Origin: Podarcis liolepis
Taxonomy: Eukaryota
DNA length: 64,000 nucleotides
Strand: one strand, 5' to 3'
Assembly: GCA_965112155.1 (NCBI GenBank)
Contig: OZ218100.1
The notes under the pieces are model-generated. The model saw only the letters and a list, made by a program, of their open reading frames with translations, did no database searches and was not told where the DNA came from. The position numbers were made by a program, and so were the translations under genes. Below, piece after piece: positions 343-26,424 of the stretch. Positions within the stretch are counted from its first letter, which is position 1; each line of letters begins with the position of its first letter.

Positions 343-584
343 CTTTTGTCTTTCTTGCGCTTGACTTAACTCTTCACCTTTGGGGACCTGCGCTTCGTAC
401 GACTGTAATTCCACCTCAACTTTATCCAGCCAAGTGCAGAGTTTCTCATGAGCTGACTGCAGCTGACCAGAAAGCTGTAGAGCCTGTTCTAAAGTCTTGG
501 ACACATCAGAACTCAGCTTAGTTATGTCCTTGTACCTTGTTTTAATGCCTTCCAATTTATCCTGAATTATGACAACTTCATCAC
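343..584 (-). CDS. DST: Dystonin exon ([13 protein letters not shown]...AQERQK), 242 nt; the gene continues left of the window
   Basis: ORF 223..657; phase 1-0; donor AAG|GTGAGC. Confidence 0.95.
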
Positions 585-3522: not shown

Positions 3523-3849
3523 CAGCATTTCAGTTTGTTGTTTCACAAGCAAGTCAGTATTGTAGTCTTGGACTGCCAGTTTGCTCAGTTTCTCATGTAC
3601 TTCATTCAGCCAATTCATCAATTCAACTTCATCCTCTCCAAAAATCTGAGCATTGCAATAGGCTTGCTGTAGAAGCTGAGCCCTACTGCCACTTTTCTCT
3701 CGAATCTCAGTGTACTGGGCTTCTGAAGAATCTAGTTTCTCCTGCACCATTTCCTTGTCTTCCTTGGAGCTCAATGCCTTTAAAGCCTGACCAATATTAA
3801 TAGCTTGCTCCAAATTTTTGTTGCGAGTGGCGATGTCTTCCTCAAAGGC
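3523..3849 (-). CDS. DST: Dystonin exon (AFEEDIATRNK...KQQTEML), 327 nt
   Basis: IFGEDEVELMNWLNEVH; phase 0-0. Confidence 0.94.
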
Positions 3850-4078
3850 CTAAATGAAGTTTTCAAAGTAGTAAGAAAAAGAAAAGAAAAACAAGCAAAC
3901 AAAAGAAAACATAAAACCAAATATGAAAACAACTCAAGAACAACCAAAAGAATATAACTTTGATGGTAAAAGAAGAATATAAACAAAGTAATAAAAAAAT
4001 GTGTTGGGGGGAATACTCCACTTTTGATTTACAAATCATAAAATAATTGCCGCAATGAAAGGCACATTAAGATCTTAC

Positions 4079-4238
4079 TTTATGTTGAGAAATCTGCTGT
4101 TGTAGTTTGGAAGCCTGTGTTCCAATGGGTTCTGAATTTGAAAGCCTCTTTTCAGTGATGGTTAGCCACTCAACCAGTGGTTCTAAAGTTTCATGGAATT
4201 GCTGTGCTACAGCTGAGATACCTTCCAACTGACGATTC
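4079..4238 (-). CDS. DST: Dystonin exon ([15 protein letters not shown]...ISQHK), 160 nt
   Basis: ORF 4067..4264; phase 2-0. Confidence 0.95.
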
Positions 4239-4651
4239 CTACAATATGTGAAAACAAAGCACATTTTGTGGGATGAGGGATGTATGAAATACTAAAAAGT
4301 TAAAATCAGCGCTTGGAAAGAACTACTTCGGTTTAGTTACGTTCACTGAATTACTTCGAAAATCTCTGAACTACACCTAAAAGTAGTTCCCATAATTGGA
4401 AGATTATGGGAGACATCCACTTTACTACAAGAATGGGTGATTATGTGATACTGATTTCCCCATATTATTTCACAGAAATTTCTAAAAATAGAACTTGTAA
4501 TATACTCAGAGCCATTTTCTCATTTAGCTTCAAATGTGAATCTTACAGTTAACTGGATGAAAATGTTGCTATAGTTTCAAATTAGTTTCTAATGCTGTAT
4601 CAAGGAGTACACCCTGCTGTACCCCTATGTGAATGCAAACATTTCAGGTAC

Positions 4652-4818
4652 CTTGTTTCTGCTTTATCAAGCAGTGCATCCCATCTGCTATCCAGGAGGC
4701 TCAGCTGTTTCAAGATCTTCTCTTTATCAGCGGGCTCTGCTGACTCTGCAATTTTCTCCCCTTCACGCTTGATTAGTTCAACAGTGGGTCTGCGGTCATC
4801 CAGCAATCTCTGGAGAAG
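4652..4818 (-). CDS. DST: Dystonin exon ([13 protein letters not shown]...LDKAET), 167 nt
   Basis: ORF 4600..4806; phase 0-2. Confidence 0.95.
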
Positions 4819-7265
4819 CTGGAGACAAAATAATCAAAAATCAAATTGCCAGGAAATGACTGTTCACTACAAGGCTGTAAAAAGATTAAGAGGCAGATTC
4901 TTCAAGGTCTTGTTTACTGGCAAAAAGAGGCAGGCTTAAGGGAACAATTTTCTGAGGTGGCAGGAAATTGTGAGGGTGCCAGCAGTCTTACAATGCAAGT
5001 GCCATAAATTGCATAAATAAGTAATTTCATTATGAGAGCGAGCAAAATGTGCCAATCTTAGCATCGGTTGTAAAGGTCTAGCATCCTTCCAAATGTTTTC
5101 ATTCAGATTTCTTTTCAATGCTATCCTGGAAGCCTCTGGAAGGGCTACAGATATATATGCCTTATATGAGGTATGATGTTGACATGTGCAGGAAGAGGGG
5201 GGAATCACAGTGGGACATTTTATAACACATGACAGTGCTGGGAACTTTTGGGGAAGCTTTTCCATTTTGGAAAAAGAAAAGATAGGAAATTTTCCGCTTC
5301 ACATAAGAACCCTCCCCATCTTTTCATACACTGTTGATGTTTGCAACTATCCACTGCAATCCAGAGAAATATCTGTTTGTTTATATAGTGCTCACCTTTC
5401 AAAACACTTGTGGCCGCATTCAATAAGATGAACACAATTCAGGGCTTAATGATGTTCCTAAGACCAAATTATTTTAATGGGGAATCAAACATGTTATAAC
5501 TTTCTCTGGATTGTGTCCCAAATTTTCAGTACAAACATATGATCATTTCGGAGATTATTATGTTGCGAGCAGCTGCAACTTTGGATACTCACTTTGGCCA
5601 GACAACCTGAGGACTTGATTCACTAAGCTTCATGCAGTGCTCTTCCCTGAGGGTTGCCTTCTATGTTTCAGCCAAAAATCCCCCCTCCTCTCTCCTACTG
5701 CCTTTTGTTAAGACTGCTCAGAGAGCACAACTTCTCTCTGATGCTGTGCATGCTGTGACCTGCTCTTTCCTTGCTCATACATTTATTTTGAACAGGAAAG
5801 TAATTATGGATCTGGTTACAGAGTTTGATGTGCTGTATTTACTCCACAACTGCCAATTCAATATTTAATATGAACCTTCTTTCCCCACCCCTTTTAAGTG
5901 AGGGTCCATCAGCAACTGTGTTATAAACAATTGTTGAACAATCTGAAGCAGGGGTGTTTGACATTATTAACTGAAGATACAGGCACAACAAGATGTTACC
6001 CTAAATCAAAACAGACTCTACAAAACTCTATAGAGACAGAAGTCAGGAAGTAAGGGGTGGAGCAGAAGCTGACACCAGGCACAGATTTCATCCCTTACTA
6101 ACCCATATGTATAGGCAGCTCGTATATGTCCACACTGAATGGCATATATGGGAAAAAGAGATTAGCTGAGAAGGGGTGGGGTGGAGGGTTGTCAAAATGA
6201 TGAAGGAGGATTGAAGCCCTGACAAAATTTTGAACTTTATTTCAACTTAAGGGAGTAGCTCTACAATGTTCTTCCCCCTGCCCCTTTTCACAGTATCAGT
6301 GATGTCTTTTCAAACATCAGATTACTTTTGATCCTCGAAATAATTGTTTTTGATGTGCATCCAGTGAAATGTACACGTGCATGAAATGATGCCAAGAACC
6401 AGCACAGATATTCCAGAGTTTTACTTGCAATATATACAGAAAGCTGGTCCAATGAAATGATTGTTTACTCTGTGCTATACATGGCCTCTGCCCCCCCCCC
6501 CAGTCTGCACCAGCTCCCCACATTTCCCAAAGAAGTGAAGAAAACCACATTTCCCCGGACAAAGGATGCAATCAATGCCTGGATGGGAGGCTGCCTGGGA
6601 ACTCCATTGAGTTCCATGGTGAAAGAAGAGATGGATATAAATTTACATACCAACTATTTGTTATATTTCTTGGTCACTTTTCTCACTGAATGAACCAAAG
6701 CAATTTAGGGCTCATCCCACACTTCCGCTTGCCTAGCCACTTTCCCCCAGGAAAACCCGCTGTCTACCACTGAATCTGAGCCATACAAGTAAAAGGCAGG
6801 ACTAATAGATCCTGTGCCACTAATATGCTACAGTCTGGATGCCTCTGTTAAAATGAGTGGAGAATTCAAAAATGAAAGTAGGAAAGGGCAAATCTTTAAA
6901 GAGAATTTCACAGATTGGGTTGAGAAAATTTGCCCTTCCCCTGAAAAAAGCCAAACACATCCCCCCACAGGAGCATCCATGACAACCATCCTAAGTGATG
7001 GGATCACAGAGACTATGGAGATGTATTTTTTCCAAGTTCTTTTGCAACTGCACCTCTTATAGCGCATGTCTAATACATACTCAGCCACACTGTTATCCAG
7101 GCCACCACATGTTATTACTGTTATTAATTACCCACTATTCATCCTAAGGCCCCGGGTGGGTTACAACATTAAAACACAGCTTTAAAAACAGTTTAAAATA
7201 CCCCACTGAGCAGGTGACAGAGAAAATATAATTAATCTAAAGATAGATAAATAACTTCCACTCAC

Positions 7266-7436
7266 TTTCTGTTCCTGTATTTGGGCCTTCACAACTTTGA
7301 ACTCAGCAGATGGAGGCTTCTGATTAGCCACAAGGTCTTCTGTGTCAATAAGCCAGCTAAGGATAGATTCGACAGCATCTTGAAACCTCCCACAGTGGAG
7401 CAGTGCCTCTTGCAACTGAGCAGCTCTTTGAGCAAC
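7266..7436 (-). CDS. DST: Dystonin exon ([21 protein letters not shown]...QIQEQK), 171 nt
   Basis: [20 protein letters not shown]; phase 0-0; donor GTGAGT. Confidence 0.96.
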
Positions 7437-8290: not shown

Positions 8291-8452
8291 CTTTTTGTTG
8301 AGAGTTTTCCATCTTGTGTTAACATCCTCAAGATCACGCTCAAGGTTATCAGTACTAGCATTTTTAGCAGCACTCTGAATAAGGCCTTGACCCAACCAAT
8401 TTACCTCCTGTTGCTTAACCTGCAGTGGTTCAATCTTTTCCTTCTCGAATAC
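8291..8452 (-). CDS. DST: Dystonin exon ([11 protein letters not shown]...WKTLNKK), 162 nt
   Basis: [14 protein letters not shown]; pyrimidine tract then AAG acceptor; phase 0-0. Confidence 0.95.
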
Positions 8453-9195: not shown

Positions 9196-12006
9196 TAAAG
9201 TTTGGTGAGGAAATTAATCAATCATCTGAATATGCTCAGCATATGTTTCTGTGGTGCATAATGATTTGCATAGTCATTTAAAAATGATGCAGTGCTCTTA
9301 ATTCTAATGGGAGGAGCTGGTATTGGACAGTGTGGCTCCTACAGACCAAGTGAGCAGTGAGATGCTGGGCACGTGCAGGAAGGGACCGTCCCCAGTCCTA
9401 AGTGCACAGTGGAGAAATGCAAGCGCTATCCAACGATTTGGGGGCCACTATAGCATGGTGAGCCTGGACCTCAGGAATGGCCTGGGAGAATGAGCTGATC
9501 ATATGACTAAGGAACTACACCAGCATTCACCTTCTAGATAAGACTAGTAATGGTTATATTGTTTTAGAAGATACTGAAAAACAGTGGGGACCATGTCCCT
9601 TTATTTCCCAGGTGGTCTTCATTGGCAAGAAATTCAAGCATGCTTCACATAATGATATCATAATGCAGGCTAACTCAACCCACCAACCTAAGTGATGTTC
9701 ATTTGAGAACTTGCAAAGGCTAGTGACAGAAAATATTCCACAGGCATCAAATGCTGTTGGTGGGTTATGAACCCAGGCTATACAAACTGTGGTCTTAAAG
9801 CTTCTTACCTTTTAAGTACTCCCTCCCCTCCCCCCCCAAAAAAAATCTTCTTTTTCTTCTTCTACTGCTACTACAGACACTGTCCCTTGGCAGCAATTTC
9901 ACTATAGTCAGCAAAATATTGTGAAGCCATTGTACTGCAATACTGTACTGAACTTTATTATTATAGCTTTACTAGCAAATATGGCTCACATCCTGAATAT
10001 CTATTTCAGCTGCCACTAGTAACATCATTCCCTTAATACAAGCAATGTTATGGGGATACTACAAGTGTACCTCAGTATGGCTAAAGTTATTCCTCAGAAC
10101 CTAGACACTCAAGTAGCCCAGGACACCCAAATTCCTAGAACAGTCTGAAAATAAAGCATGTTTATAGTTGATGTACCTCAATATCAGCCCTAAGTAATTT
10201 TTATGCTCACATAATTGAAAACAAAAATGATAAGAAGCCTCCCCAAGATGGGATACATAAATTGTACACCAAAATGGCCAAGCACAACACTAGTAGGAAA
10301 AAAGAAACTTGCTATGCACATTGTGTAAGAAACCCAGATTTTCTAGGATAGTCTGCAAACAGCACATTTTCACACCTAGGTTTACGTCATAACAGCAGCC
10401 AGCACTTCAACACACAGCAAGCACATTTGACACACAGGACAGTGTGTGACCCATCTCTCCTCGAGGCCTTAAATCCACACGAATAACCAGGAGAAGGGGG
10501 TTTTGCAGAGGCAGTGAGGAACTTAAGTCCGAACATGGACAGCTCACACACATTTGAGACTACATGCAATAATCCTCAGACACAGTGGTGTGTTACATAG
10601 TAGCAACCAGGAACACACAAACACACACACACGTATAATGCTGTTTTTTCTGTACTCAATAGCACTACCTATTTGCAGGACATTGTGGGATTTGTTAAGG
10701 GGGGGGGGCAATATAAAGCAGAGTTCTGAGGAACCAAGTAGTTGAAAACAGCAAACAGGTCTTACCTTTCCCACAAAATAATATATAATATGGGCAAGTT
10801 CTCTTTACTTTAGAGAAATAAACAAGGGCTGGGATGCAAAAGCTAATTTACACATACCCAAGTGTTAGCTCAGTAGTATCTTTGGCAATCAAACAGGCAG
10901 GCACATGTACACACCCCAGGTTCCATAAACTACTTTTGAAATTCCCCTCTCTTTCAAAAGAAGCTTCCTGTGTTTGAGGTTGCTGTGTGAGAAACACAAG
11001 TCCTGCTCCAGTTTAGGCCCATGGAACTAGTAACGCAGTCCTTCAATCCAACTCTCCTCTATTTCAGATGTTCATATATTTTTAAGACAATTCCATAGCA
11101 ATCCAAACCGAGTTGTTCCCCTTGATTTGTTGTTTAGATACACATACCCACTCAAAAAAGTAGGAATTGAGGCTAGAGTTTGCCAGAACAGCTTAGCAAC
11201 AAGTCCTAAAATAACTCAAGACACAACCAGATCAGAGTGACCAAAAACAAAAAGAACAAAATTAAATTAAAGACTTCACAAGCTCCCCATGCTTATTACA
11301 AAGCTGTTTTCTACTTCCTTACTTCATTCACCGCTCAGTAAATGTTACAAGATCTCTTGTAAAAAATCCCCTACAACTTTAGGACTACTTTTTGGCATGA
11401 AGATGCAAGGAAATAATTTCAGTACGTGCAACAAGCCTTTAATCTGTGTACTTTGGAAACCGCAGCAATCTGAGCATCGTTGTGTATACCTTTATGATGA
11501 ACAGTGCAATCCTATACTTGTCAGCTCAGAAGAAGCATGCCCATTGGGTTTAATGGGCCTTACTCCCATGAAAGTGTGTACAGTATATGGCTGCAGCTGA
11601 AATCTGGTTAAATCTGAATAGGGAAGGCCTATCTGCCCTTGAATGGCATTGGCTGCTTGAAACATAATTTGAGGGGAGGGATGGAGGGGGTGCTGAAGAT
11701 CAATGCCCAGTGGAAGCATTCCAAATAAAGGGTAACAGGCACCATCTGGACAATAAATAGCCATGCAACCAAACAGCTGGAAGCAATCAACCCTGTCACA
11801 AACTGCCCTTAATCAATTTACTGAAGTGACCATCTCGCCAATTTCTGCCTTCTAATAACTTGTTGGGCAAATGATTCTAAAGGAGCTCTTTGGGTAGATT
11901 AGCAAAATCTAAACATAAGCATTCATGATGCAATTACAGAAGAAAAAATAAATAAAAAATAACCCACCCTGCAGCATGAAAAGAATGCATTTAAGTTTGG
12001 AATTAC

Positions 12007-13299
12007 CTTATAAGACAACATGCCATTGCACACTGTATCCAAGGTTTGTTCTATTTGCATGCCTGTAGTCCAAAAGCTGAATTCAGCGCTGATTGGATTT
12101 GCTTTTTGACAGCATGTGGTATTATTAGCCTCTAAAGCCTGACAGGACAATTCTATTGCACTTGTATGGGCCATATTAATTTCCTCAGTTTCATGCAAAA
12201 TCACATATTTTACTAAGTCCGTATCACTAGCATGTAAAGCTGCATCATCATCATCATCATAAATATCTATATCCTGAGTTGCAATATCCAGGAGGTCCTT
12301 TTCAATCATCCTGTCTTGGGTGTCTAATGGCTCATTAACTTCAGCGCTGTTCCTCACTTCCTCTTTGTCTAAAGTGAAATCATGTTCCCTCTCACCATCC
12401 TGAAGCCATGCTGGATGTGCTAAGAGGTCTTCTTTCAAATATGTCAGTGGACTGCAATGTCCATCTCCTTCCCCTTGGTTGCCCTCATAGTTCCAGAAAG
12501 ATTCTTGCTCTATATGTGAAGCATTCTGCAATTTTACTCGACAGTGTCCACTGGTAGGAGCACTTCTGGAGGTAAGCAATGAAATTTGATGTTCACTACT
12601 AGAAATGGTAGGAGAAAATGATCCAAATTTACCTACAAACTGATTATCGTCTATGGAAGATATGCTCCTAAATTGAGTTTGTTCCCCTTCTAGCACATCT
12701 TGTTTTTCTTCTCTTTCTGCTGGAGGACTGCACAGACCAGAGTCATCTTCTTCGGAAGTTAGAGAACTAGTCCCACATTTGACCTGGCCTGTTGCTGCTA
12801 AGTCGGACACATCAACAGTCCCAGCAAGTGAGCACTCACTTTTATTTGCATAGTCTGCAAAATTTGGTGGGACAAGCATCCTCCAGGATCTCCTATGTTC
12901 TTTCTTTTCTGTGTGATACTTTGCTTTGGGCAGGCCAGCTGTTCGAATGATGTCACTGTTCAGCTTAAGGGCATCAAAGATCATTTTTTCATCTAGCTTA
13001 TTAGCTTCCCGTCCTCTGAGTTCAAAGACACTAGAGGAGGAGAGGGCACCATTGGAGCACAATGTACTAAGGTCCAGTGTTCTATGACTATACGGCAAAG
13101 TCCGATCTGAGAAATGCCTGGAGGAGAGGCTGCCTTTAGAACCTGAGTCAATCTGTTCATTCAGCCGCACTGTGTCATAGATTGACCTCTGGGGAACATA
13201 ACAGTCCTCAATATTTATATCCTCTTCTTCTTCATCACCTTTTCCTACACAAGGAGGATTCTGGCGTAAACAGTCTGGCCTGCTCAGCGGCTTCCCCAT
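12007..13299 (-). CDS. KIAA0754-like coding exon nested in a DST intron; putative alternative first coding exon of a short dystonin isoform (431 codons)
   Basis: ORF 11923..13326; first ATG at 13299 in GAAATGG context with in-frame TAA at 13342-13344 upstream; starts MGKPLSRPDCLRQNP...IEDCYVPQRSIYDT, recalled as near-identical to the KIAA0754 N-terminus; phase-0 donor AAG|GTAATT after 12007. Confidence 0.85.
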
Positions 13300-13349
13300 T
13301 TCTGCAGGAATTAACAGATCTAGCACTGCTGCTAGGCTATCTTATTGGA

Positions 13350-23806: not shown

Positions 23807-25281
23807 CTTAAATACGTTCAGCTGCTGATTTATCGTCTCAATTTCCATTCCAACAGAACCCTGGGACTCTTCATGCTCTTCAACTTCCCCAAGCAGTTTA
23901 GAAAACCCCTTTAGTTTACTGTAGAACTCTTCAACGCGGCTAATAGTCCCTTCAATCTGTTCATCTCTGGCTTTTGCTCTGTCTAGCAACTTGTTGCACT
24001 GCTTATTTAAAGCCTCCAAGTCCCGTTTTATACCTGCAAGATCTGGAGAAGCTTCAGCTTCATTTGCGAGCATCATTTTGCAGGTATTATTTGCATTTTC
24101 ATTACTGGTTATGAGTTCCTCCAACTTTTTCAGGAAAGTTTTTATATCCTTTCGCTGTGACTGCAGTGTGACAAGATCCCTACCCACGGAATCCATACTG
24201 TCCAATTCATCGTCGAACTCTGCAAACTGAGAAAACATCTCTCGAATGCTATTTTGGAAATGGCCAATTCCCTGGAGTTTAGTCTCCAGGAATGAACATT
24301 TATCTTCAACCTGCTGACTGATGGTGTTGAATTCTTCTTCTAATGTTTCTGCCTGCAACAAGAGGTCAGAGACACCTGATGAATCTGAAGCATCTGCCAC
24401 CAGTTCTTGGGCAAGCTTTTTTGTAAGGTCCACTTGAGCCTTCATGGCCTGGAGTGTTTTCTGCTGAGCCTGCATAATCGTCAAGTGTTTGTTACTGTAA
24501 GTCTGGGGTTTGAGAGAATCGTGTGTTTCCAGCTGCTCTCTGGCATTCTTCAGCTGCTCTTCAACATCCTTTGATGACTCTTGAAACTCTTTCAGTCTCT
24601 GAGACATCTTTTCCAGACCATCTCTCTTAGCATGCAGTTGTTCTGTGACTATATCCATGTTCTGGATCAGCAGTGTCTTCTCCTCTTCAATAATGTCTTT
24701 GTCTGTCTGACAGGCACTGAGTAATGTTTCAGCTGCATTACTTAATAGCTCCACCAACCCTTGGTGTTTGTCTAGGTCCTTCTGCCAGCTCTTCACCTGA
24801 GCGATGGAATTCTCTAGCCGAGCAGGATCTATGCTCATTTCTATTTGAGAGATATTGCTTTGGCATTTCGCTATCCAGGGTTGTAGGTTTTCTACATGCT
24901 CTCTGTATCTAAGGGCTTTTTCCAAACAATCATTTAATTTATCTTGCCTTTCTTTAACTTGCTTGTTCATTTCATCCCAGTTACCTCTGAGCAAGTTCAG
25001 TTGGGCCTGCAGCTCGGCCTTCTCCGCACCCTGAGTCTTCTGGAGTAAACTTTCACCTTCTGCAATGATTTTTTCATAAGAGCCAGTCTGGTCAGACAAG
25101 GCAGCCTTGAACTCTTTCTGATCATCAATTAATGTCCACAGAGACTCCAGCTTGGTAGAGATGGGGCAAGGCTGATTCTGTTCTTCCTTCTTTTTGTCCA
25201 ACCAGGCCTGAAAGTCCTTAGACATTTGCTGGAACTGATGAGAACTAACGTAAGTTGACTGAAGTTGCTCAATGTGATTGC
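23807..25281 (-). CDS. DST: Dystonin large spectrin-repeat exon (GNHIEQLQS...QQLNVFK), 1475 nt
   Basis: ORF 23780..25369; [33 protein letters not shown]; phase 1-0; donor AAG|GTAAGA. Confidence 0.96.
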
Positions 25282-26424
25282 CTGCAGAAGACAAACAAAC
25301 AAAAGTTCTTAAAATCTGTGTCTCTGAGTGGCTTCTAACTAGGATTTTGGTTGATGTTATTTCAATCAAGGAGAAGCATTATGTTATAGGAAAATGCACC
25401 CTATTGCCATTTTAGATTGGAGCATGTTAGCTGAAGTGTTTATTGCAGACCACCAGCTTGGAAAATAATAGTATTGCAGCCTAAAATAATAACCCCTTGA
25501 TAATAATAATAATCCCTTGACAACAAGGGATTCTTGAGGGTGGGGAACTAATCAGGTAACCAGGATAGTATGATCACTAGTGCCACTATAAACATCATAA
25601 ACATAAACAACATGCACTATGAACAGTAAAGCTTGCAGTAATCCCTCAACAGTCATTGAGATAAAATGCTTCCAAAGATCACTGCCAGTCCTGTTACAAC
25701 TTTACAGAACTCCTGTTGGGACTCCCTTGTTGAGTCTAAAACACCCCCACCCCCAAAGTAAGGGCTCATCCATTCTTGTCCTGTGCCTAGAAAGCACGGG
25801 TCCAAGCAGTGTTCTGCTTGCCTAGCTAATTCAGTTTCCAGGCCTGGAAAGCATGGATCCAAGCAGCTTTGCCCTGTCACTTTCCCCTGGAAAACCCGCC
25901 CTTTAGTGCTAAACGGAACAAATGGCAATCAGGTTTTGCCGTGTGTTCTGATTCAGCACTAAACCGCCAACTTCTCCAGGGGAAAGAGGCAGGGCATATA
26001 GAAGTGTGGATGAACCCTAAGACTGTCTGAAACTGTAGCATGGTCAAGACAAATACATAAATGTTGGAGAAATACATGTATTTTCCCTACATAAATTTCA
26101 CATAGAAGCATTAATTTACAATGTGTGAATCCCTCACTGGTAAACACATATACAATCTACTGTCAATCATATGTCATTTGATATCTTAAAAGATTCAAAC
26201 AACTGGCACAGTCTAGAAATATGCAGCTATTCTCACCCACCCATTCATAGAAGCTAGGCCATCAATATCATTTCATCTCATTTGATGTGGTTTATTTATT
26301 TGTTTATGACTTTTGTAATTATGTAAATCTTGTCATGCTGTAAGCCACCTTGAGCATTGTTTTTTTTAACTGTGGAAAGGTGGCATACAAATAAAAAATG
26401 ATGGTGATGATGATGTTAACAAAC

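Follow-up and report, generated by a model that had tools for sequence, protein, structure and literature searches.

An alternative first exon in a dystonin intron of Podarcis liolepis, orthologous to exons already annotated in other vertebrates, probably opens a short dystonin isoform

Results

An open frame in a dystonin intron

The window analysed here is a stretch of 64,000 nucleotides (nt) from Podarcis liolepis (NCBI GenBank assembly GCA_965112155.1, contig OZ218100.1), which carries part of the dystonin gene (DST) on its minus strand, and the element in question is a long open frame inside one dystonin intron of 15,354 nt. Translation of positions 13299-12007 (minus strand) gave 431 codons without a stop, with MGKPLSRPDCLRQNPPCVGKG as the first residues and LSYK as the last. 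The start codon, ATG at 13299-13297, stands in the context gcagaaATGg, which has G at both -3 and +4; an in-frame TAA lies upstream of it, and the frame closes at a phase-0 donor (Table 1). An earlier reading of the same letters, made without database searches (hereafter the sequence-only reading), had described a 431-codon frame with this start context, an upstream stop and a phase-0 donor in an intron of ~15.4 kilobases (kb), and all of this was confirmed by the translation and the sequence.

Stop codons occur across the host intron at a frequency of 0.0535 per codon, which puts the probability of 431 open codons at ~5e-11, and the longest other open runs in this intron, on both strands, span 106-151 codons. 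A chance open reading frame (ORF) is ruled out by this probability together with the homologues described below. In a Pfam scan, the translation of 431 amino acids (aa) matched no family.

The next dystonin exon opens with GTA TTC GAG AAG after ctgaag at 8452 and closes with AAAAAG^gtacgt at 8292 (^ marks a splice junction). With its closed-off start and a phase-0 GT donor that matches this next exon, the frame falls among the DST-type KIAA0754-like first exons, KIAA0754 being the name once given by human annotation to an exon of MACF1, the paralogue of dystonin.

A further feature lies directly before the start codon. At 13302-13320 (minus strand) we found an acceptor-like ttcctgcag, in which cag follows a pyrimidine-rich tract and ends two bases 5′ of the ATG. 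Entry through such a site would make the frame an internal cassette exon of full-length dystonin, and five models from other species (P0009, P0035, P0071, P0073 and P0080), in which different residues stand ahead of or replace the first ~13, could be taken in favor of this. The reading frame decides otherwise: the upstream dystonin exon ends in phase 0, and entry at 13301 reads AAA TGG GGA AGC CGC TGA, a stop after five codons. The frame of the exon itself is closed upstream by the TAA at 13344-13342 and therefore cannot be entered from upstream coding sequence. An in-frame cassette exon is thus ruled out, and we regard a cassette exon of any kind as extremely improbable. A non-coding 5′ exon may be joined at the acceptor ending at 13302, and the frame could then still be the first coding exon.

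Homologues and annotated models that carry the exon

A HMMER scan of 1.84 billion representative proteins returned 47 relatives of the exon, 43 of them with E-values below 1e-10. The top match was XP_062981115 (LOC134397954) of the lizard Elgaria multicarinata, with 81% identity over the whole exon (E 2e-226), and the next-ranked relatives were a whale-shark LOC and a sturgeon protein. All relatives whose source was looked up, among them 20 of the 47 from the HMMER scan, are from vertebrates. The ‘KIAA0754 homolog’ of Hyaena hyaena (XP_039100370, P0013) showed 52% identity to the first 174 residues (E 1e-50); its alignment contains MGKPLSRPDCLR..DCYVPQRSIYDT..NEQID, KLDE..IFDALKL and RRSW..PPNF, and these blocks also align family-wide. 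The similarity to KIAA0754/MACF1, which the sequence-only reading had proposed, was in this way recovered by protein comparison, with every block named in that reading aligned.

A second search, in which the N-termini of long models were used as the query to reveal proteins of 1,800-5,600 aa, showed that many dystonin-named proteins of ~2,100-2,750 aa begin with MGKPLSRPDCLR. Dystonin models with the exon were found in squamates (Phrynosoma platyrhinos, Pseudonaja textilis), in one bird and two turtles (Haliaeetus, Pelusios, Gopherus), in many teleosts, and in bear, meerkat, titi monkey, bats, pig, blue whale and beaver (Ursus, Suricata, Plecturocebus, Rhinolophus, Pipistrellus, Sus, Balaenoptera, Castor). 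The possible loss of the exon in mammals, raised earlier from the sequence, is contradicted by these mammalian models, which start with it. Nor is the exon hidden, as had been claimed: it already stands in Ensembl/UniProt, NCBI and other gene sets, named either as dystonin or as an ‘uncharacterized LOC’.

Several of the MACF1 entries P0117-P0123 (UniRef; birds, crocodile and turtles) start with MRINEQIDQGSK, which corresponds to residue 44 of the exon. These are probably truncated starts without the MGKPLS N-terminus, an annotation artefact.

The predicted splice junction and the domains behind it

Among the 141 proteins fetched, 29 dystonin models have a first exon of 367-446 residues joined straight to VFQKEEIEPLQ. 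They comprise Phrynosoma, Pseudonaja, Haliaeetus, two turtles, nine mammalian models, teleosts and three clusters of proteins from assembled sequencing runs. For the window side of the comparison we used codons 8452-8420 of the next exon. The Phrynosoma protein reads ..LDTVCNGMLSDK^VFEKEEIEPLQ, where the window has ..LDTVCNGMLSYK^ and then the 8452 exon, and the first exon of the orthologous models ends at the equivalent residue (..LDTVCNGxxSxK/Q^). The earlier proposal, made from phase, that the frame splices without a shift to the exon at 8452 is therefore matched by an identical junction in 29 dystonin models of other vertebrates.

The three assembled-run clusters, derived from public runs, hold ORFs of 2,636-2,690 aa on contigs of 9,093-10,073 nt; ORFs of this size on contigs of this length are intron-less and thus represent spliced messengers. 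The short isoform is therefore present as RNA in at least some mammal-like species. A separate observation concerns fourteen runs of 79-148 million letters (three organisms, five studies), which hold 54-80% of the sampled words of the exon. This share is too high for shallow whole-genome data, and the runs therefore represent RNA or target capture.

Domain content was examined by a Pfam scan of three full-length models (P0089, P0097 and P0098). All consist of 12-13 spectrin repeats, EF-hands and one GAS2 domain, and no match to the calponin-homology (CH) or plakin domains was obtained in these three models.

Colinearity with a related dystonin model

The Phrynosoma platyrhinos dystonin model JD844_023976 (P0087) was mapped to the window by local tblastn. 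Its residues 1-431 align to 13299-12001 with 75% identity, and the remainder follows the dystonin exons in the order given in Table 1, from 13299-12007 through 8452-8292 and down to 582-343, after which the model runs off the window start. Six downstream spectrin exons are visible in the window, and the EF-hand and GAS2 exons lie beyond its start.

Table 1. Features of the dystonin locus in the window, in the direction of transcription (^ marks a splice junction).
Feature	Coordinates	Strand	Remarks
Upstream canonical spectrin-repeat exon, ends TTT AAG^gtaaga (phase 0)	23807..25369	-	Spectrin PF00435, E 1.5e-25; would be bypassed by the short isoform
In-frame TAA	13342..13344	-	14 codons 5′ of the ATG
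Probable alternative first coding exon of dystonin (DST-type KIAA0754-like), 431 codons, ATG to GT donor	12007..13299	-	Sequence and homologues
MGKPLSRPDCLRQNPPC at the N-terminus, candidate signal for N-myristoylation (Gly2, Ser6) and palmitoylation (Cys10, Cys17)	13249..13299	-	
Most conserved block IEDCYVPQRSIYDTVRLNEQIDSGSKGSL, aa 30-58	13126..13212	-	Predicted short helix aa 40-51
Conserved block KLDEKMIFDALKL, aa 101-113	12961..12999	-	Best-predicted helix 104-112, block pLDDT 77
Conserved block RRSWRMLVPPNF, aa 136-147	12859..12894	-	R136, R137 and S138 nearly invariant
Acidic SLTSEEDDSGLCSP with DSGxxS, aa 179-192	12724..12765	-	Specific to the DST-type exon
Phase-0 donor gtaatt after TCT TAT AAG	12001..12006	-	Exon end 12007; read from sequence
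Next dystonin exon, predicted splice partner	8292..8452	-	Phase-0 acceptor ctgaag^GTATTC; weak Spectrin match
Downstream dystonin exon	7263..7436	-	P0087 residues 484-541, 98% identity
Downstream dystonin exon	4651..4788	-	P0087 residues 551-596, 98% identity
Downstream dystonin exon	4076..4240	-	P0087 residues 596-650, 95% identity
Downstream dystonin exon	3523..3849	-	P0087 residues 650-758, 85% identity
Downstream dystonin exon, last within the window	343..582	-	P0087 residues 768-847, 85% identity

A stand-alone transcript as an unlikely main product

Past the donor, the hexamer ATTAAA occurs in the intron at 11554 and at 11443 (minus strand), that is, 450-560 nt further on, and these are candidate poly(A) signals for a stand-alone transcript. 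We therefore considered that, through intron retention or intronic polyadenylation, the exon might mainly form its own unspliced transcript, which would encode a protein of ~467 residues without the spectrin rod (counted from GTG 13326, with 27 codons of read-through after the 431, up to the stop at 11923-11925). KIAA0754 itself is annotated in this way, and so are the NCBI models XP_062981115 of Elgaria (487 aa) and XP_048452406 of whale shark (430 aa), single-exon loci that read into the intron, as well as many mammalian ‘KIAA0754 homolog’ entries; Voelzmann et al. (2017) also leave ‘its own isoform’ open. The read-through tails of the window, Elgaria and others are, however, unconserved, in contrast to the conserved donor position and the LDTVCNG..K/Q^ ending before it. 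Moreover, on the 9-10 kb assembled-run contigs the exon is followed by the complete rod and tail, and in both paralogues and in hagfish it stays in phase with its downstream neighbour. We consider it unlikely that the stand-alone form is the main product; spliced and stand-alone transcripts could coexist.

Age of the exon and its paralogues

A longer version of the exon, of ~1,090-1,150 residues, is carried by MACF1 models of wombat, crane, ptarmigan, Xenopus, two snakes and teleosts. In 11 MACF1 and hagfish models the exon is joined to xFQKEQVDPLQ..GQGLIQSA, which is homologous to the exon at 8452. The hagfish model (Eptatretus burgeri, P0029, 1,899 aa) starts with MGKPLSKPDCLG and has a first exon of 607 residues spliced onto the homologous spectrin exon. 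As the intron position is the same in DST, MACF1 and hagfish, the module is older than the DST/MACF1 split, and the hagfish model suggests that the exon was probably present at or before the base of vertebrates.

A maximum-likelihood tree built from residues 1-200 of the exon groups the window sequence with Elgaria, Phrynosoma and Pseudonaja (support 100/99), and this squamate group is nested in a DST-type clade (100/98) to which sequences from shark, sturgeon, teleosts, bird, turtles and mammals also belong. Sequences of the MACF1 type stand apart from the DST-type ones; the hagfish branch is long and its position unsure. The proposal that the module predates the duplication, put forward in the sequence-only reading, agrees both with the shared intron in the two paralogues and hagfish and with this separation. 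The window exon is the dystonin copy and not the MACF1 copy, as indicated by its clade, by its DSGxxS motif (see below) and by flanking exons 85-98% identical to those of Phrynosoma.

The tree also contained a third, teleost-only clade (si:ch73-305o9.3; P0040, P0043, P0044 and P0047; support 100/100) of proteins of 660-990 aa that start with MGKPLSRPGCFR. Judged from its sequences, this group may represent another paralogue of the lead.

Conservation, motifs and predicted structure of the lead

The two halves of the exon evolve differently. Residues 1-215 show 83-91% identity across amniotes (91% to Elgaria and Phrynosoma, 83% to a bat), and residues 216-431 only 27-71% (62% to Phrynosoma, 37% to Pseudonaja), with the frame open in every lineage. 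The fast evolution of the C-terminal half, and a lack of promoter-like features upstream, would suit a decaying relic, an unused frame kept open in this species by recent shared ancestry with species that use it. Yet all 431 of the 431 codons are open against a stop frequency of 5% per codon in the surrounding intron; the start codon, its Kozak context and the donor are intact; every conserved motif is present; and the N-terminal half retains the identities given above, down to a bat. We judge a relic to be very improbable.

Motifs were counted without P0136 (labelled Homo sapiens). In 114 proteins chosen for an MGKPLS start, so that residues 1-6 are fixed by this choice, P8 and C10 never vary and C17 occurs in 107. 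The combination of Gly2/Ser6 with Cys10/Cys17 fits co-translational N-myristoylation plus palmitoylation, as a candidate signal read from residues. Lys3 is also present in known myristoylated neuronal calcium sensors. Replacement of the first ~13 residues, as in the five models with different N-termini mentioned above, would abolish the Gly2 signal.

Further along the lead, D32, C33, Y34, P36, Q37, R38, S39 and I40 are invariant (DCYVPQRSI) and V35 is nearly so. Three conserved blocks, KLDE..IFDALKL and RRSW..PPNF among them, are common to the dystonin and MACF1 exons. DSGxxS, instead, was found in 32 of 34 orthologues of the DST type, which range from shark to mammals, vs. 0 of 21 MACF1-type sequences; the window has it as DSGLCS (aa 186-191), in a region of low predicted local distance difference test score (pLDDT). 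DSGxxS matches the beta-TrCP phosphodegron consensus, and a role as degron is conceivable from this match.

AlphaFold2, run with an 18-row alignment, gave a mean pLDDT of 45 and a predicted template modelling score (pTM) of 0.21, with three short helices at 40-51, 104-112 and 139-142. The lead is thus predicted to be disordered and to carry short conserved motifs rather than a fold. A search of the ESM Atlas for structures resembling residues 1-200 yielded nothing usable, the best score (0.78) being within the range of shuffled controls.

Discussion

A probable short dystonin with its own first exon

We conclude that the frame is probably (about 0.85) a functional alternative first exon of dystonin, spliced to the exon at 8452, and as such the dystonin orthologue of the KIAA0754 exon of MACF1. 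In Podarcis liolepis an intronic promoter would start transcription, translation would begin at ATG 13299, and the donor at 12007 would be joined to the acceptor at 8452. Judging from the orthologous models, this would yield a short dystonin of ~2,600-2,700 residues, with a ~430-residue disordered lead followed by 12-13 spectrin repeats, two EF-hands and a GAS2/GAR microtubule-binding domain, and without the calponin-homology actin-binding domain and the plakin domain. The sequence-only reading had foreseen a product without these last two domains, and the three scanned orthologues, which have only spectrin, EF-hand and GAS2 domains, support it.

Several points weigh against this conclusion. 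NCBI models the exon of Elgaria and whale shark as an unspliced, stand-alone ‘uncharacterized LOC’. The supporting dystonin models are mostly automated, and some may have been propagated by homology and not built from RNA. Of the runs that hold the exon, none is on record as RNA. Upstream of the ATG there is no CpG island (observed/expected ratio ≤0.63) and no TATA within 500 nt, although we regard the lack of these as uninformative and not as negative. Finally, the lead has no confidently predicted fold, and any function assigned to it depends on the reading of its motifs.

A more specific role for short dystonin can be proposed tentatively from the motifs. A lipidated N-terminus would hold the microtubule-binding tail at the membrane, and short dystonin might then be a membrane-to-microtubule tether, myristoylated at Gly2 and palmitoylated at Cys10 and Cys17, with its abundance set through the DSGxxS phosphodegron and with a role separate from that of the a/b/e isoforms. 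We hold this possibility to be less likely than not.

Prior knowledge and meaning

Neither the exon nor the short isoform is new, and the window holds an orthologue of an annotated feature, not a discovery. The review of Voelzmann et al. (2017, bioRxiv 10.1101/122010, Figure 1 legend) mentions, as a possible alternative start, one more exon that dystonin and MACF1 have both kept. The six isoforms in the MACF1 review of Hu et al. (2016) do not include a KIAA0754-type short isoform. The MACF1 entry of Thinon et al. (2014) concerns post-translational myristoylation in apoptosis and not the MGKPLS N-terminus. Our literature search (KIAA0754/MACF1, myristoylation, isoforms, promoters) found no functional study of the exon and no paper that pairs KIAA0754 with myristoylation. 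Any novelty that is left concerns how the isoform works (a candidate lipid anchor and degron), for which no study was found, and this holds for all vertebrates and is not specific to the window.

For annotation, the result means that the exon in this genome should be described as an alternative first exon of dystonin and not as a separate ‘uncharacterized LOC’. More broadly, it points to a spectraplakin isoform conserved from shark (probably from hagfish) to mammals, for which the literature search found no functional study. Mutations or gene traps located 5′ of the exon would spare the short isoform, and those located 3′ would hit it, which could bear on differences between dystonin alleles; a lipid-anchored short dystonin, if real, could matter for the reading of dystonin mutations up- or downstream of the exon. 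These implications for alleles and isoforms likewise extend beyond this window.

Comparison with known systems

The closest relatives are the short dystonin models of other vertebrates, namely those of Phrynosoma (P0087), Pseudonaja (A0A670YVC8, P0089), Haliaeetus albicilla (‘dystonin-like’, P0097), Rhinolophus ferrumequinum (P0098) and Sus scrofa (A0A480TTF5, P0100). They are orthologues that share the junction of exon 1 with VF(E/Q)KE.IEPLQ and show no structural difference from the feature in the window, although the C-terminal half of their exon diverges fast. The loci LOC134397954 of Elgaria and LOC125483062 of Rhincodon typus have the equivalent exon at a comparable location, but it is modelled unspliced into the intron and is not joined to dystonin.

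The nested KIAA0754 exon of MACF1 resembles the window exon in its N-terminal module, in its position in the homologous intron before the homologous spectrin exon, and in being a phase-0 first coding exon. It differs in belonging to the paralogue, in its length (~1,090-1,150 vs. 431 codons) and in the absence of DSGxxS. The short MACF1 models are correspondingly longer, ~3,100-3,400 aa vs. ~2,600-2,700 aa for dystonin.

Lead sequences of dystonin/BPAG1 isoform 3 have been described as having ‘potential myristoylation or palmitoylation sites’ (Voelzmann et al. 2017, bioRxiv 10.1101/122010). Both that lead and the window exon are alternative dystonin leads with a candidate lipidation signal for membrane targeting. 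The isoform 3 lead, however, is located at the 5′ end of the gene, before CH2 and the plakin domain, whereas the window exon lies deep in the rod and its use would remove both; the two sequences are unrelated.

In dystrophin (Dp260, Dp140, Dp116 and Dp71) and in short nesprins, an intronic first exon within the rod gives a short C-terminal form without the N-terminal actin-binding domain. The layout proposed here would be analogous, with a unique first exon spliced in frame to common downstream exons. The Dp forms belong to another gene family and have few unique codons, in contrast to the 431 codons with conserved motifs of their own in the dystonin exon.

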